Source: Chrysemys picta bellii (Eukaryota). Taken from it: a stretch of DNA of 64,000 bases. The stretch spans positions 1,488,001 through 1,552,000 of the forward strand of contig NC_088810.1 in the NCBI RefSeq assembly GCF_011386835.1, written 5' to 3'. Positions 5,405 to 14,492 of the stretch are shown in pieces. The stretch's first letter is position 1. Every line of letters begins with the position of its first letter. Below the pieces are notes generated by a model. The model ran no database searches. It was not told where the DNA came from and saw only the letters and a list, made by a program, of their open reading frames with translations. The position numbers and the translations under genes are program-made.

Positions 5405-6505
5405 CTTTTCTCTGCGAGGGGAGGGGCGAGTTGTGTGAGAGCACACCCTCCCGCCAGATCAGCTCCATCAGCCCAGCTAGCCCCATATCCTGTCCCCCCG
5501 GGCTCAGACCCACCTAGGCCCCTATCCAGCCCCTCCCTGCTGCCCCAGATCAGCTTGGTATCCCCTTCTTTGGATTAGCCCCATGTTTCTTTCTTTCACT
5601 CTAGGTTTCTTTGCCCCACACCATGAAACACCTCAGCTTCCATAGGGCCCCTCACTGCAGTGTCTCAGCCCTCACTCCGCCCACCCCATTTCCTCCCATC
5701 GCTCCCCCCAAGGAGCCCCCTCCTGTCCAACCCTCTCTCTCCATGCAACCCCCAGCTGTCCCCCCCATGTGGGCCAAAAGCTCCCCACACGAAGCCATTA
5801 CTGCCTGAGGACTCCTCCCCCCAGGCCCACCCTCCCCATGGAGGCCCTCCCATTTTCCCCCCCCCTACAGATCCTTCCCCCTCCCCTCCCCTTGAGCCCC
5901 CCAAACTCTCCTCAACTCTTCCCATGGACCCCTCCTCTCCCCCCTCCCAGGGAGTCCTCGTCATCTAAATCCTCATGGAGCCCCCAACCCCTCCCCCCAC
6001 AACACAAAGCTACCTCTCCCCATGGCCCCTTTCCCCCCGACCCTCATATGCAGCCTCCCAACCCCCCCCCCCAGCCAGATCCCCATGGGACCCCTCCCCC
6101 ACCTCCCCACAATGGAGACCCCCCCCTCAGCCACCCCTCCCCCCACGGACCCCCTCAGCCACCCCTCCCCCCACCTCCCAGCCACCCCCCATGGAGACGC
6201 CCCTGTCACCCCTCACCTCTCTCCCTCTCCCTTCTCCTCCCTCGCCTGCTTCGCCTTCCTGTTTCCGATGCCCACCCAGCCAGGACCCCTCCCTGTTTCC
6301 GCTGGGGCTGCCCCTGCCCGCGCCTGATCTAAACTACCGGCCCCCGGGCCTGCTCCCTTCCCTTCCCCTCTTACCCCCATCTGGGCTCCCTCCCCCCAAC
6401 CCCGCCCCCGGATATGAGCAATTTTAATCAGGCATTCATTCGGGCAACCCAAAAGACGGGGGGACGCGGGGTCCTTCTGTCCCCAGCGTCGCGCTACTGC
6501 GGCAG

Positions 6506-6693
6506 GCGCATGCGCGTTGGGAAAGGCGCGTGGCGAAGTGGACTGCGCATGCGCGACCTAGATCGTGTACTCTGGGTCCGACGGTGCGCATGCGTATAGG
6601 TTCTCTCAATGCGTTTCAGCAACGATGCTACGACGAAAGGTCTGCGCATGCGCGATACTGGGAGGCGGGGCACTACAATGATGCGCATGCGCA
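6506..6693. promoter_or_regulatory. CpG-rich ZNF576 promoter with five NRF1 palindromes
   Basis: GCGCATGCG motifs at 6506, 6544, 6585, 6643 and 6682, immediately upstream of the inferred ZNF576 first exon. Confidence 0.8.
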
Positions 6694-6879
6694 GGCCGCC
6701 AGGACGCTTCCCCAATGAGGCGGGGTGACAATTCAGGGGCAGCAGCAGGTTGCGGGCTCCTGCGGGAGGCGACCCACCATGATATCCCAGGGTGCACCGG
6801 GGCACGGAGAGGCCTATTCCCAGCGAGCACAGAGGCATCCACCCCCCACGTTCCCATGATGCACCAGGGAGTGGAGAGC

Positions 6880-7330
6880 CCCCTATTCCCAGCATGCACT
6901 GGGGTCTGGAGAGCCCTAACTTCCCAGCATGCACTGGGGGGTGCAGAGCCCCAACTTCCTAGCATGCACTGGGGGGTGCAGAGCCCCAACTTCCCAGCAT
7001 GCACTGGGGTCTGGAGAGCCCCAACTTCCCAGCATGCACTGGGGGGGTGCAGAGCCCCAACTTCCCAGCATGCACTGGGGGGGGGTGCAGAGCCCTAACT
7101 TCCCAGCATGCACTGGGGGGGGGGGGTGCAGAGCCCCACATTCCCAGAGTGCACTGGGGTGTTCAGAGCCCCAAATTCCCAGCATGCTCTGGGGCATGGA
7201 GATCCCCAACTTCCCAGGGTTTACTGGGGTGTTCAGCGCCTCAAATTCCCATGATGCACCAGGGAGAGGAGTGCCCCATATTCCCAGAATGCACTGGGGT
7301 GTTCAGCGCCTCAAATTCCCAGGGTGCAGT
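6880..7330 (+). repeat. ~37-41-bp minisatellite whose unit contains a ZNF143 (SBS) motif
   Basis: About 10 units of agagccccAACTTCCCAGCATGCACTGGGgg; the core TTCCCAGCATGCACTG fits the Staf/ZNF143 consensus. Confidence 0.8.
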
Positions 7331-7620
7331 GGGACATGCAGGGCTGTGCTGCAGGGTGGAGGTCAGCCAGGGCGCCCCCTTTCCTCTCCCAGGCCGGGCT
7401 GGCCCCAGCGTGGCCCTGCGCTGCCAGCAGTGCCCATTCAGCAGCCGCGCTTTCATCAGCAGAGTTTCCCATCAACACAGAGCAAAGGTCCTGTCCGGGT
7501 CTCCCTTTTATTTCTGATTGAAGGAAAACAGACAAGAAAGAACTAATACAAAGTCTGCGCTGCGGAGGGCCCAGTGTGTGTGTCCCTGGCTAGAACATCA
7601 GCCTCGCTGAGCTCAGCAGG

Positions 7621-7849: not shown

Positions 7850-10567
7850 CTACTCCTTGGCATGGGCTTGGTGCAGCATCCGCTCTGCGTCCTCCGTCAT
7901 CTCTGCCAGGGCCTGTGTCAGCAGCCTGTAGGTGGCCTCCAGGGAGATCTCAGGCTGCCCCTCGGCCCCGCGGCCCCAGTAGGGCACAAAGTTCCACATT
8001 CGGGAGGAGAAGGGCGCTGGCTTAGTGATCTGCTTCAGCACCTGCTCCGGGTCCAGCCGCTTGACCCAGGGGCTCCGGATCTCGGCCTGGAGCAGCCCGG
8101 CCGGCTTCCCTGTGGCTTTGGCCACCTGGGCCAAGGACTCCTCGTCCAGGCCCAGCTCGATGGAGAAAGCCGAGATTGTGTCGACGAGGCTGGTGGCCAC
8201 ATCCGGGCCAGGTTTCTCTGCGTAGTACAGGCAGGTATTCAGGGTCTTGCCCCAGACGTCCTTCATCAGCGCCTTGCTCTTCCTCCTCACCAGGCGGCTC
8301 AAGGCCACGGGGATGGCCTTCTCCAGTGCCTCCCTCTTCAAGGCTGGGGCATCGCTCTCCAGGGCCGCCCGGAGGGCCGGCAGGTCGTAGGCCTCGCGGA
8401 GAAGGCTGGAGACGAGGAAGACCCTGGGGGAGCCCACGCCGTCCTTCTGGAGGGCATCCACACAGCTGCTCCGGATCTCCTCCAAGGGGCCGGGCTCGGG
8501 GCCGGGCTCAGAGCCGGGCTGGGCGTCCACATCCACCTTGGTCCTGATGAAGAAGAACCGCTTCCCGGCCGCGCTGATGGCCCGGGCGAGCTGGCTCTGG
8601 GCGTGGCGGTAGCGCTCCGAGGCCGTCAGCAGGAAGAAGTCGTAACGGGACAGATCCAGCCGCCCCACGTCCTCCTCCGTTACCCCCACTCCCGGCAAGT
8701 CCCACAGATACAGGCCAGGCACGGTGGGGTGGGCGTAAGCTGTGGCTTTCCGGGTGGTGGCCATCACCCCCGTGGGTGCTGCCTCTGGCTCCCCGCAGCC
8801 CACCCCCCTCAGAGCGTTCACCAGCGCCGACTTGCCCGAGCCAGCCTCCCCCAGCACTGCCACGTCCAGCCGGATCTGCGAGGGCTCCTCCAGCGCCGAG
8901 CGGATGATGGCAGGCACCCCTGCCAGTCCCCCCGTGGCACAGGCCTGGTACAGCTCTTGGGTCTTCCTCGTGTTCACAGCCCTCAGGTCGTCCAGCTCCC
9001 CGTCCTGGGCCCTGCACAGAGAGGACGGGACGGGGGGATTGGAGCCCCTCTGCTGAGCTTTGGGTAGAGAGGAAGCTTGTACCTGGTGTCACTGGAACCC
9101 AGGACACTTGGGGTCTGGTCCCAGCTCAGCCACAGACACCCTGTGAGTCACTGCCTCTCTCTGGGCCTCAGTTTCCCCACCTGTATGTAGGAGAAGGAGC
9201 CTTCTTTTGTCTATGCAGAATGGAAGCTCCACCTCTTAGAGGATGTGGGGCAGGGACTGGGGCTTGGGCGGGGTCTATGCAGCGCCCCATAGCGGAGCCC
9301 CTGTTCTCGAGCGGGGTCTATGCAGCGCCCGGCACAATGCAGCACTTAGTGTGATGGGGCCCCGCAATACCCAGTGGGGAAGTTTCACTGCAGTTTCTGT
9401 TAAAAAGCTGATTTTTCAAAGTGCTGTAAAATTTCCCCCACTCCCCTCCCAGAGCCAGAACCCAGGAGTCCTGGCTCCCGGCCCACCTGCTCTGACCCAC
9501 TAGACCCCACTCCCCTCCCAGAGCTGGGGAGAGAACCCAGGAGTCCTGGCTCCCGGCCCCCCTGCTCTGACCCGCTAGACCCCACTCCCCTCCCAAAGCT
9601 GGGGAGAGAACCCGGGAGTCCTGGCTCCCGGCCCCCCTGCTCTGACCCGCTAGACCCCACTCCCCTCCCAGAGCTGGGGAGAGAACCCGGGAGTCCTGGC
9701 TCCTGGCCCCCCCTGCTCTGACCTGCTAGACCCCACTCCGCTCCCAGAGCTGGGGAGAGAACCCAGGAGTCCTGGCTCCCGGCCCCCCTGCTCTGACCCG
9801 CTAGACCCCACTCCCCTCCCAGAGCTGGGGAGAGAACCCAGGAGTCCTGGCTCCTAGCCCCGCTCCACTCACCTCTTCAGCTGGATTAGCTCCTCCTCCA
9901 GTTTGTCCTGGAACTGGCTGAACTGGTACCTGTCCGTCTCCAGGGCCGAGACCAGGAAAACCCTGTTGGGCTCCAGCCTGTTCTTGGCCAGCACCTCGGC
10001 CACCCCGTTCCGGGCCAGCGCCAGCGCCTCGGCCGAGCTGTACCGGGCCTGGAACCGCCGCTTGGCCGTGTGCAAGTCCAGGTCCACCTTGGTGCGCACC
10101 ACGTAGTAGGGCTTCCGCTTCTGCTGGAAGGCCTTGAGGAGCTGCAGGTGGGGATCTGCCGGGCTTCCCTCGGCCACCACCAGCACCAGGCAGGTGAACT
10201 TCCCCAGGTCCCCCAGCCGCTTCGTGTAGTCGCCCGGCTTCTCCGGCTCCTGGAAGCCCGGGAGATCCCACAGTGCCAGGTTGGGGTAGGTGGGGTGGGT
10301 GTAGCCGGCCGGCTGCCCCGGGGGTTCCGGCGCCTGCTGGAAGAAGGCCTGGGCGTTGTCCAGGCCGGGGCGTTCTCCCACGAGGGCGTGGATCAGCGTG
10401 GTGACCCCGGCGGCCCGGCGGCCCACCACAGCCACGTCGACCTTCAGGGTGTTGACCGAATCCACCAGGGCCTGGAGGCGGGCGGCGGCCGTGACGGGGT
10501 CGTGGGCTTCGTAGCGGGTCCGCAGCTCCCGGAGGAAAGCGTCATCCAAGCCCACCGGGGCTGCCAT
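7850..10567 (-). CDS. Tandem double-domain immunity-related GTPase (IRGQ/IRGC family), 618 aa; coding exons 10567-9873 and 9011-7850
   Basis: GCCATGG start after an acceptor at 10578/7. The donor AG|GTGAGT (9872) and acceptor TGCAG|G (9013/2) join in phase 2 (Arg); 695+1162 = 1857 nt. Domain 1 motifs: GRRAAGVT, LWDLPG, TKVD. Domain 2 motifs: GEAGSGKS, TGVMATT, LWDLPG, TKVD. AATAAA on - at 7507-7512. Confidence 0.88.
9110..9190 (+). mobile_element. CORE-SINE (MIR-like) fragment
   Basis: The segment ctctctgggcctcagtttccccacctgta is the CORE-SINE hallmark. Similar cores occur near 29950, 35140, 42395, 46040 and 49655. Confidence 0.6.
9440..9860 (-). repeat. Array of ~74-bp tRNA/SINE-head-like repeat in the IRG intron
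   Basis: About 5-6 units of ggagccaggactcctgggttctctccccagctctgggaggggagtggggtctag...gagcag on the - strand. Confidence 0.9.
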
Positions 10568-10981
10568 GGCCCACCGCTGCGAGGGGAAGAAAGCTGGAGT
10601 CAGGACTCCTGGGTTCTCTCCCCGGCTCGGGGAGGGGAGTGTGGGCTGGTGGTTAGAGACGGGGCCAGGACGCCTGGGTTCTCTGGGGGAGACGGGGGGT
10701 CAGGACGCCTGGGTTCTCAGGGGAAGGGGGGAGACAGGACCCCTGGGTTCTGGGGGGGTGATGGTGGTTGGGGGGGGACCAGGACGCCTGGGTTCTTGGG
10801 GGGGGGGGGGGGCTGGGAGCCAGGACGCCTGGGTTCTCTGGGGGAGACGGGGGGGTCAGGACGCCTGGGTTCTCAGGGGAAGGGGGGAGACAGGACCCCT
10901 GGGTTCTGGGGGGGTGATGGTGGTTGAGGGGGGGGACACCAGGACGCCTGGGTTCTCGGGGGGGGGGGTCCAGCCGCTCAC

Positions 10982-11126
10982 CCGCAGTGGGTCCCTCCCG
11001 GCCGATGGCTCCAGGCCCAGTGACAGCGGGGCCGGGAAATAGAAACCGACGCGGCGGCTCCTCCCCGCGGGGGCCGGGCCGGGCCGGGCCGGAGGGGGAG
11101 GAACCGGGAGAGACGCCGGCGGAGCC
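10982..11126. promoter_or_regulatory. Bidirectional GC/CpG-rich promoter and first exons of the two IRG genes, with an ISRE at 11034-11047
   Basis: Outward-facing donors: GTGAGC on - (10981) and GTGAGT on + (11127). GGGAAATAGAAACC fits the ISRE/IRF consensus GAAANNGAAAC. Confidence 0.75.
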
Positions 11127-12102: not shown

Positions 12103-14492
12103 ATGAACGAAGCCCCAGACCCCGAAATGCCCCCGCAGCCCCCGGTGGACACCTCGCCGGGCTCCCCGGACCGGGGCGACGTCTCGGTGGTGATCGTGGG
12201 GGCGCCGGGCTGCGGCAAGTCGGCCCTGCTCAACGCCGCGCGGGGCCTGGTGGAGGACGACGCCCGCGCGGCCCCGCTGGGGGCCCCGGCGAGCTCCGGG
12301 GGGCCCGTGCTGTACCCCGACCCGGCCCGGCCCAACCTGCTGCTCTGGGAGCTGCCCCTGACAGAGGGCGAGGGGCCGGAGCGCTGGCTGGCCGAGGGGG
12401 ACGTGGTGCTCCTGGCCACCGACGGGCTATTCGGTGCCAGCCATGCCCGCCTGGCCCAGGAGGCCCGCGGCGCCGGCAAGACGGTGCATTTCGCCCGCAC
12501 CAAGGCTGACCTGGACCTGCACACCCTCCGGCGGCTCCTGGGAGAGCGCTACGACCGGGCCCAGGCCCTCGACGCCCTCCGGGCCGCCTGCACCCAGTCC
12601 CTGGTGGCCCATGGCCTCGGGGAGCCCCTGCCTGTCGTCTTCCTCGTCTCCGGCCACGAGCCCCGAGAGCTGGACGGTCCCCTGCTGCGCCAGGCTCTGG
12701 TGGGAGACGTCAGGATGTACGAGAGGTGCGGCTTGTTTATTGTAGGGTCTCTCAGGTGGGCCGCTGTTGTGGGGATGCTCGGGAGAGGTAGGGCTGGTTT
12801 GTTATTGTGGGGTTTCTTAGGGAGACGAGTGTGGTTGCTGCGGGCGGAAGGGCCTCAGGTGGGGTGATATTGTAGGGTCTCTTTGGAGGGCTGCATGCAG
12901 TGTTTGTTATTGTAGGGTCTTTTGGTGGGTTCATTTTATAGGGTCTCAGGTGGTTTGTTATTGTAGGGTCTCCCAGAATCCCCAACACCCAGCCTGTCCC
13001 TCCATGTCTCACCCTCACTAGTCCCCCCCACTCCTCATCCCGTGTCTCCCCTGCTCTGCCTCTCCCTACTCCCGCCCCATACTCCCCGGTCCTTTCTTAC
13101 TCTGTTCAGTCCCCCCCAGCATCTCATGTCCCCTCTACCTCCCCCCCAGTATTCCCCATTGTCTTATGCCCCCGGTGCCATCTGGCATCTCACACTTTCT
13201 GTGCGCTCCCCCCCACCGGTGACCCCCATTGTCTCACGCCCCCGTGCCCCCTGGTGCCCCCATTGTCTCACGCCCACTGTGCCCGTAGGGTGCTGCGCCC
13301 CACGCTCTCCGGATTTGAGCAGATCAGCGAGCGGGAGGTGGCCGAGATTCAGGAGGCCTACGAGCTGGGCGGCCTGGCGGAGGTGGTGACCCGGGTCCAG
13401 TGCAGCCTGGAGACCCTGTGGAACGCCCGGCTGGATGTGGCCGTCACGGGGGAGTCAGGGGCTGGCAAGTCCACCTTCGTCAACGCCCTGCGAGGCCTGA
13501 GTGACGAGGACGAGGGGGCGGCCCAGACCGGCGTGACCGAGACCACGGCCCAGCCCACGGCCTACCCCTATCCCGGCTACCCCAACGTGACGCTGTGGGA
13601 CCTGCCGGGCATCGGGACGCCCAGCTTCCGGGCCGACCGCTACCTCGAGGCCGTGAATTTCACTCGCTACGACTTCTTCATCATCCTGGCCTCGGAGAGG
13701 TTCAAGGAGAACCACGTCCGCCTGGCCCGGGCCATCGTGGAGCAAGGCAAACGCTTCTACTTCGTGCGCGCCAAGGTAGACAACGACCTGGAGGCCACGC
13801 GGAGGAGGAAGAACCCGCCCGAGGAAGAGGAAGTGCTGGAGGAGATCAGGAGGGATTGCCGGGAACGGCTGGGTCAGGCCGGGCTGGGCGACGCCAAGGT
13901 CTTCCTCCTCAGCAGCTTCGAGATGGAGAAATACGACTTCCAGGCCTTCGAGGACACCTTGGAGCGAGAGCTGCCCGGGCACAAGCGTCACGCCTTCCTC
14001 CTCTCCCTGCCCAACCTCTCGGGGGCCATCATCGAGAAGAAGCGGCAGCTGCTCCACCAGGAGGTCTGGAAGGTGGCCTTGGTCTCCAGCCTGGTGGCCG
14101 CCGTGCCCTTGCCGGGGCTGGCCTTCACCTGCGACGTCTCCATCCTGCTGAGGAAACTGGCCGCCTACCGGCAGGATTTCGGGCTGGACGCGGCCTCCCT
14201 GGCCCGGCTGGCGGAGAGGGCCGGGAAGCCGCTGGAGGTGCTGCGGGCCGAGGTGCGCAGCGTGCTCGGGCGCAGCATCAACAAGGAGGTGGTGATCGGG
14301 CTGCTGGGGAAGGCCACCGGCGGGGGCTTGGTGGTGGTCAACTTCTTCTTCCACCGGATCCCCATCTACGGGGCGCTGGCCTCCGGGGGCATCTCCTTCC
14401 ACACCACCTACTCCATGCTCAGCCAGTGCCTGGAGGAGCTGGCGGCCGACTCCCAGCGGGTTCTCGTCAAGGCCTTCGACAGCGAGGTCTAA
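12103..14492 (+). CDS. IRGQ: IRGQ orthologue, tandem double-domain IRG, 608 aa; coding exons 12103-12725 and 13289-14492
   Basis: Acceptor CGCAG at 12094/5. The donor AG|GTGCGG (12726) and acceptor CGTAG|G (13287/8) join in phase 2 (Arg); 623+1204 = 1827 nt. RGDVSVVIVGAPGCGKSALL resembles recalled human IRGQ QGDVTALFLGPPGLGKSALI, and GFEQISEREVAEIQEAYELGGL resembles GFEVLGAAELEAVREAFETGGL. Domain 2 has GESGAGKS, TGVTETT, DLPG and AKVD. Syntenic with ZNF576 and PINLYP-like genes. Confidence 0.85.

Follow-up and report, generated by a model that had tools for sequence, protein, structure and literature searches.

IRG proteins are best known from mouse, in which GMS regulators restrain GKS effectors. 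Tandem and "quasi" IRG forms occur in mouse and fish and their function is poorly understood; the mammalian "quasi-GTPase" IRGQ (FKSG27) is an autophagy receptor whose LC3-interacting region (LIR) LIR1 lies at residues 186-189 of the human protein. Here we analyse a gene of this family in the painted turtle, Chrysemys picta bellii. It occupies positions 7850 to 10567 of a 64,000-nucleotide stretch of contig NC_088810.1 (the window, to which all positions refer) and encodes a 618-residue protein with two IRG G domains. It lies on the minus strand, as do all features described below unless the plus strand is named.

Bekpen et al. (2005) described the IRGQ "quasi-GTPases" together with mouse tandem IRG transcripts (PMC1297648). 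In the zebrafish irgg-irgq1 gene a truncated GTPase is joined to a truncated quasi-GTPase, which was proposed to regulate its partner, and the irgq1 P-loop reads GETGSGVS (PMC1297648, supplementary file 10). In human IRGQ an N-terminal G domain and a second IRG unit flank a linker that carries an LIR, and GABARAPL2 is bound by the switch regions of the N-terminal domain together with this LIR (PMC13172515).

The painted-turtle locus brings to light an old lineage of vertebrate double-domain proteins of the IRGQ-like kind, in which one domain became a fixed Lys to Val pseudo-GTPase before turtles and lepidosaurs split, and the other keeps its nucleotide-binding motifs while repeatedly losing its catalytic Glu. 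The lineage thus offers a natural experiment in the conversion of IRG G domains from enzymes to switches or scaffolds, and a point of comparison for the origin of mammalian IRGQ.

A spliced, two-coding-exon gene for an IRG-family protein

Two open reading frames (ORFs), 10567-9869 (232 amino acids) and 8977-7850, share one frame. A preliminary description of this stretch had taken that frame to be fully open, which it is not: single-frame translation from 10567 to 7850 meets nine stop codons between the domains, so that the reading frame is continuous only once an 861-nt, phase-2 GT-AG intron has been excised. Coding exon 1 (9873..10567) begins with the ATG at 10567, comprises 231 codons plus 2 nt and encodes domain 1; its end at 9873 is set by a strong donor, AAGAG/GTGAGT. 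The intron (9012..9872), which holds the nine in-frame stops, opens with GTGAGT and closes with a TGCAG acceptor, and the start of exon 2 at 9011 is set by a pyrimidine tract followed by the acceptor CTCTGTGCAG/G. Coding exon 2 (7850..9011) contributes 1 nt, 386 codons and the stop, and encodes domain 2. Excision of the intron restores an AGG Arg codon and keeps the frame, giving a product of 231 residues, the residue of the split codon and 386 residues, 618 in all.

This structure is matched by annotation, by a transcript and by other genomes. The RefSeq model XP_065430038.1 of Chrysemys picta bellii (P0054, 618 amino acids, "interferon-inducible GTPase 5-like") equals the two exon translations plus the split Arg: its residues 1-231 are identical to the translation of exon 1 and residues 233-618 to that of exon 2, with the junction LKR/AQD. 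A softshell-turtle Logan transcript contig (L010, 2,324 nt) encodes an uninterrupted 618-residue ORF, in which nucleotides 37-731 match exon 1 of the window and 732-1893 match exon 2, the boundaries abutting exactly; its product clusters at 90% identity with a Pelodiscus sinensis protein. The position and phase of the intron are identical in eight other turtle genomes, the donor context GAGGTGAG is common to all turtles compared, and in the caecilian gene a split falls at the corresponding residue (230 versus 232). Fourteen small sequencing runs contain 62-83% of the words of the stretch, of which the exons make up 68%; no run is on record as RNA. Annotation, transcript and the comparison of genomes together show a real, spliced, two-coding-exon gene of the painted turtle for a 618-residue IRG-family protein.

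The splice donor AG/GTGAGT (9867..9874) itself contains an in-frame TGA (9871-9869), which is the first of the nine stops, so unspliced RNA would stop after 232 residues and encode domain 1 only. The choice between splicing and retention would thus be a choice between the 618-residue tandem protein and a 232-residue protein of domain 1 alone. Products of 230-234 amino acids are on record for relatives of the gene (P0171, P0173, P0316, P0322). About half of the intron is occupied by a tandem repeat at 9457-9861, in which a 75-nt unit recurs 5.4 times at 95% identity. Related pieces, AACCCAGG(A/C)GTCCTGG, are also found in the intergenic region at 10600-10800. Just downstream of the 3' end of the gene, at about 6500-7550, ORFs of the two strands overlap and encode repeated units resembling MHWG(V/G)QSPNFPACTGG, which point to a further tandem DNA repeat.

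Both exons match the Pfam family IIGP (PF05049) far above its cut-off of 24, exon 1 with 92.6 bits (3.4e-26) over profile positions 21-220 of 375 and exon 2 with 224.1 bits (3.8e-66). Searched with phmmer, exon 2 finds Irgb10 (4.5e-51) and Irga6 (1e-43). The top matches by sequence and by fold are solved IRG structures, among which there was no solved structure of IRGQ. In an AlphaFold2 model of XP_065430038.1, built from 41 aligned sequences (predicted local distance difference test 78, predicted template modelling score (pTM) 0.54), residues 278-618 align to residues 68-412 of Irga6 (Z 22, root-mean-square deviation 17 Å) and residues 11-231 to residues 34-254 of GM4951 (Z 19.7), with no C-terminal helical domain. 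As modelled, domain 1 is an IRG unit, N-terminal helices and G domain, that is cut after the G domain. It ends at about profile position 235 of 402, and the protein does not consist of two full-length IRG units. The layout shown by these comparisons is that of the IRGQ type, in which a truncated G domain is followed by a linker helix and then by a complete IRG unit.

We placed the two domains in a FastTree phylogeny of 104 G-domain units, a set that included no mammalian IRGQ and no IRGM sequence. The domain-1 sequences form one clade (support 0.99) and the domain-2 sequences another (0.91), both apart from the units of the neighbouring IRGQ-type gene, from IRGC-like single units and from units of the fish irgq1 type. 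By these comparisons the gene is shown to belong to an old, unnamed IRG orthogroup, with members in lungfish, salamander, caecilian, alligator (where it is degenerate), turtles and lepidosaurs. No mammal or bird member was found in protein searches, which is suggestive of loss rather than proof of it. Two candidate identities were rejected: domain 1 is not the orthologue of fish irgq1, since the two form separate clades, and the gene is not an orthologue of IRGC, as IRGC-like single-unit genes form a clade of their own beside domain 2 of the neighbour. Three IRG G-domain units per chain were observed in an "IRGQ-like" protein of the lungfish Protopterus (P0176, P0318) and in a protein of the catshark Scyliorhinus (P0175).

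Motifs of the two domains, their conservation and selection

Translation found every motif quoted in the preliminary description at its place. The P-loop of domain 1 reads GRRAAGVT (10400..10423), which departs from the canonical G1 motif GX4GKS: the Walker-A Lys is replaced by Val55 (codon 10405-10403), and HMMER alignment with solved IRG structures sets Val55 opposite the P-loop Lys of Irgb10, Irgb6 and Irga6. Domain 1 lacks a switch I of the form TGxxExT, and has Ser and His at the positions of Irga6 R159 and D164. It retains G3 (DLPG, 10256..10267), G4 (TKVD, 10082..10093) and G5; the G4 motif falls in the best-conserved stretch of the domain, residues 158-171.

The pattern in domain 2 is different. 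Its P-loop, GEAGSGKS (8828..8851), is intact and canonical, and G3 (DLPG, 8690..8701), G4 (TKVD, 8531..8542) and G5 are retained together with R365, the invariant equivalent of Irga6 R159. Switch I reads TGVMATT (8753..8773), which the same alignments pair with TGVVEVT of Irga6, so that Ala316 (codon 8761-8759) stands opposite the catalytic E106. This switch I Glu is missing from both domains. The position of Irga6 D164 is occupied in domain 2 by Gln in turtles and by His in most orthologues. The protein begins with MAAPVG and offers no N-terminal Gly for myristoylation.

Compared with an older painted-turtle model (P0001), the window exons differ at six of the 618 residues (V5A, E14K, A52G, V128L, M315T and R319Q), one of them in the domain-1 P-loop and two in or beside switch I of domain 2. 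Ala52 in GRRAAGVT and Met315 in TGVMATT are specific to this assembly, GRRGAGVT and TGVTATT being the readings of the older C. picta model and of all other emydids. The differences between the assemblies may represent polymorphism at functional sites.

Of the two substitutions that the preliminary description had singled out, the replacement of Lys by Val proved conserved, being present in all 33 reptile orthologues, and the replacement of E106 by Ala did not, being found there in hard-shelled cryptodires only. Across the 33 turtle and squamate orthologues Gly49, Gly54 and Val55 are each 100% conserved in a pattern G-x-x-G-A-G-V-S/T, and G4 is the best-conserved segment of domain 1. Outside this set the domain-1 P-loop ends in GKT in the newt, GKS in the caecilian, GVS in the lungfish and GTS in the alligator, whose copy is visibly degenerate. 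We rejected the view that the lesion is peculiar to turtles, as the Val is common to squamates and lungfish.

The E106 site of domain 2 varies far more. Hard-shelled cryptodires have Ala there, as a caecilian does again. Thr is found in pleurodires and the softshell, Gly in geckos and a cordylid, and Gln in Varanus, Pogona and Phrynosoma, and Glu occurs in tuatara, in many other lizards (Elgaria and Podarcis among them) and snakes, and in newt and lungfish. Position 316 is the least conserved of switch I, its commonest residue reaching 36% against 91-100% at the other key positions; among the other IRG GKS domains sampled, 171 of 195 have Glu at this site. Judged by this variation, position 316 looks released from constraint rather than selected for Ala.

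The P-loop Lys of domain 2 is itself replaced in some lineages, by Asn in snakes (GSGNS; P0029, P0031, P0032, P0036) and by Arg in agamids (GSGRS; P0027, P0037), as further independent steps towards a double pseudo-GTPase. The orthologues of Alligator mississippiensis and A. sinensis (P0179, P0314) look degenerate. Their models are shorter (574 and 512 amino acids), with GPCRAGTS in domain 1 and, in domain 2, GSGHT, no switch I and WDLSDAG where others have WDLPGxG. By these alignments both lesions belong to the old orthogroup, with domain 1 a fixed pseudo-GTPase and domain 2 a unit that repeatedly sheds catalytic residues yet keeps its binding motifs.

Selection was estimated as dN/dS (omega) exon by exon on nine turtles, the window and eight other loci. 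The Goldman-Yang maximum-likelihood estimates of omega on the species tree are 0.16-0.33 (exon 1) and 0.17-0.32 (exon 2), and likelihood comparison rejects omega = 1 for both exons (2dlnL 74-245). Pairwise Nei-Gojobori (NG86) omega is mostly 0.3-0.6, with a maximum of about 1 between the two most closely related species (dS only 0.01). On the same three taxa, omega is 0.064 for exon 2 of the plus-strand neighbour versus 0.20-0.21 for this gene. The gene is maintained by purifying selection, about three-fold weaker than that on the neighbour. None of the full-length turtle and squamate models examined (more than 30 species) has an interrupted ORF. With omega in both exons well away from 1, the ORF intact and the Val fixed in 33 of 33 orthologues, the gene is selected rather than decayed, as the preliminary description had supposed.

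These results bear directly on the idea that the two ORFs are unrelated remnants of a decaying gene and that the 618-residue model is a construct of the gene predictor. The nine in-frame stops between the ORFs and the degenerate appearance of the alligator copy would fit such an origin. It can hardly be right and is already close to refuted, since the spliced softshell transcript contig joins exactly these exon boundaries, the phase of the intron is conserved, omega is far below 1 in both exons and the ORF has stayed intact in more than 30 species.

Nucleotide state, possible roles and the divergent neighbour

Both lesions have counterparts among mutants of Irga6. The K82A mutant retains wild-type affinity for GTP and does not hydrolyse it, E106A behaves similarly, and in cells both remain constitutively loaded with GTP and exert a dominant-negative effect (PMC2581590). 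No substitution of Glu106 permits activated hydrolysis, and E106A still oligomerises (PMC3042988). Because these mutants bind GTP without hydrolysing it, we consider it fairly probable that the turtle gene encodes a spliced protein of IRGQ layout, with a pseudo-GTPase as domain 1, that acts as a GTP-holding, non-hydrolysing scaffold or regulator. The earlier proposal that the protein binds nucleotide without normal hydrolysis draws its backing from this same precedent. Under such a mechanism domain 2, and possibly domain 1, would hold guanine nucleotide without assembly-stimulated hydrolysis, and the protein would serve as a scaffold or regulator loaded with nucleotide, not as an enzyme of the dynamin kind. 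The G-domain interface would be its likely contact surface, whether domain 1 meets domain 2 of the same chain or the partners are other IRG proteins, and it would probably be co-expressed with its IRGQ-type neighbour from a shared promoter region bearing an interferon-stimulated response element (ISRE).

Several points weigh against this reading. About a quarter of the domain-2 sequences of the orthologues keep Glu at position 316, so that the ancestral protein may have been catalytically active, and the Ala316 of turtles may be neutral drift at a site that is no longer needed. Domain 1 may bind no nucleotide, because it has lost switch I besides the Lys. The deep nodes of the domain tree are weak (0.05-0.7), and the pTM of the structural model, only 0.54, bears on the arrangement of domain 1 relative to domain 2.

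The same motifs can be read in favour of an active enzyme, in which domain 2 still functions as a GTPase and the protein serves as an effector in the manner of the GKS IRGs; the missing catalytic group would then be supplied by the tandem partner domain or by a heterologous IRG, or basal hydrolysis would be enough. The intact nucleotide-binding motifs of domain 2 and the invariant R365 agree with this, a Glu of domain 1 (in APEPP) aligns with Irga6 E106, and the ISRE and the IRG context would suit an induced defence protein. Even so we regard an active effector as unlikely. Activated hydrolysis in Irga6 survives no substitution of Glu106, and the D164 equivalent of domain 2 is altered as well, to Gln in turtles and His elsewhere, where D164H is deleterious in Irga6 (PMC3042988). 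The candidate Glu of domain 1 is not kept in squamates, being Gln or Lys in some species, and the start MAAPVG lacks the Gly for myristoylation.

The gene stands head-to-head with an IRGQ-type gene on the plus strand, in the window as well as in Mauremys and Emydura. In the latter two the divergent IRGQ-type gene encodes 608-619 amino acids, and the gene studied here is followed by a C2H2 zinc-finger gene. The motifs of the neighbour are canonical, save for a DxxG taken up below. The first nucleotide of its coding exon 2, at 13289, is the third position of a split codon, so that its intron has the same phase as that of the gene studied here. At the start of this exon the neighbour carries an LIR-like FEQI (13314-13325, plus strand) within SGFEQI, in the position that LIR1 occupies in human IRGQ. 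The corresponding place in our gene reads DGELDDL and holds no aromatic residue in any orthologue, and no LIR1 of the IRGQ style was found in the inter-domain linker of the orthologues compared.

This absence matters for a further possibility, that the protein is a nucleotide-independent adaptor like mammalian IRGQ. Its G domains would then be protein-binding folds only, and the G motifs kept in domain 2 would reflect evolutionary inertia on the way to an alligator-like degenerate state. The layout is the same as that of IRGQ, whose N-terminal G domain binds GABARAPL2 (PMC13172515). The motifs of domain 2 erode repeatedly (GSGNS in snakes, GSGRS in agamids, GSGHT without switch I in the alligator), and the site of the catalytic Glu is hypervariable. 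Nevertheless, G1, G3, G4 and G5 of domain 2 vary little or not at all among turtles and most squamates, which is hard to explain without nucleotide binding, and DGELDDL takes the place of the LIR-like GFEQI of the neighbour, with the IRGQ-style LIR1 absent. We therefore judge a pure adaptor rather unlikely, and return to a GTP-holding scaffold or regulator as the preferred reading.

Between the two divergent genes, about 470 nt upstream of the ATG, lies an ISRE-like core, GAAATAGAAAC (11036..11046, plus strand). The pattern GAAANNGAAAC has one match in the whole 64-kb window, where 0.21 would be expected. Interferon control is plausible. That the protein might restrain or scaffold its neighbour, as the preliminary description proposed, is a conjecture on which the head-to-head linkage (in the window and two other turtle genomes) and this ISRE-like core bear. 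A pyrimidine tract with a CAG acceptor (10568..10590) lies 9 nt upstream of the ATG and tentatively indicates a non-coding 5' exon farther upstream. The 5' untranslated region of the softshell contig weakly matches window positions 10995-10979 (15 of 17 positions), which might place a non-coding first exon some 40 nt downstream of the ISRE-like core.

Reading the lesions and the locus together, domain 1 with its GV[ST] P-loop might be a built-in inhibitor of the GMS kind that clamps a GTP-loaded domain 2 by way of the G-domain interface, and the gene and its canonical IRGQ-type neighbour might form an interferon-driven pair of regulator and effector. This combination is a long shot. If it were true, the mammalian loss of the gene would accompany the decay of IRGQ into a pure adaptor, and the recurrent change of Lys to Val, in domain 1 of reptiles and lungfish and in fish irgq1, would define a third P-loop class beside GKS and GMS.

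Comparison with described IRG systems

The closest resemblance is to IRGQ and to the plus-strand IRGQ-type neighbour, which share with this gene a truncated N-terminal G domain, a linker and a full IRG unit, as well as the loss of GTPase motifs. The neighbour further shares an intron of the same phase at the domain boundary, and is adjacent and divergently transcribed. The lesions are complementary: domain 1 of the neighbour keeps GKS and has lost DxxG, whereas domain 1 of this gene keeps DxxG and has lost the Lys. The two domains of the neighbour fall in clades other than those of this gene (0.99 and 0.91), and constraint on this gene is about three times weaker. Unlike the IRGQ type, the gene opens its exon 2 without an aromatic motif of the LIR kind, and in contrast to IRGQ itself no mammalian member of its orthogroup was found in protein searches.

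Zebrafish irgg-irgq1 is likewise a spliced tandem, of a truncated IRG unit and a quasi-GTPase unit, with the same change of Lys to Val; Astyanax irgq1 has GVT. The order is reversed, however: in zebrafish a canonical unit precedes the GVS unit and both are truncated, whereas in the turtle protein the GV[ST] unit precedes a full-length one. Because fish irgq1 and domain 1 of this gene form separate clades, the change looks convergent.

The mouse GMS proteins Irgm1-3 also have an uncharged hydrophobic residue in place of the P-loop Lys, although it is Met in GX4GMS and Val here, and the GMS proteins are single full-length units. They carry the correlated changes E106R, D164H and R159Q (PMC3042988). 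In the turtle protein, domain 1 has His and Ser at the D164 and R159 positions, and domain 2 has Ala at E106 and Gln at D164 (His in most orthologues) and keeps R159. The substitutions are similar in the His at the D164 position, in domain 1 and in domain 2 of most orthologues, and in the loss of the R159 equivalent in domain 1; a regulator role is plausible.

The Irga6 mutants have parallels in the turtle protein, whose domain 1 bears a change of the K82 type and whose domain 2 bears E106A exactly. They are point mutants of a single-domain, myristoylated effector, whereas the turtle changes lie in two domains of one chain, and domain 1 has also lost switch I. In mouse Irgb2-b1 and Irgb5-b4, two IRG units are likewise joined in frame, with the donor at the end of the upstream unit; these differ in that both units are full length (about 47 kDa each), are recent rodent duplicates and keep GKS.

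Quasi-GTPases, the GVS P-loop and the regulation of a partner domain were already known in 2005, and the locus adds no new principle to them. What is new is a separate orthogroup, old in the lungfish-tetrapod lineage; a reversed polarity, with the quasi unit before the full unit; the retention of the Val since the split of turtles and lepidosaurs; and the recurrent loss of the catalytic Glu in domain 2.

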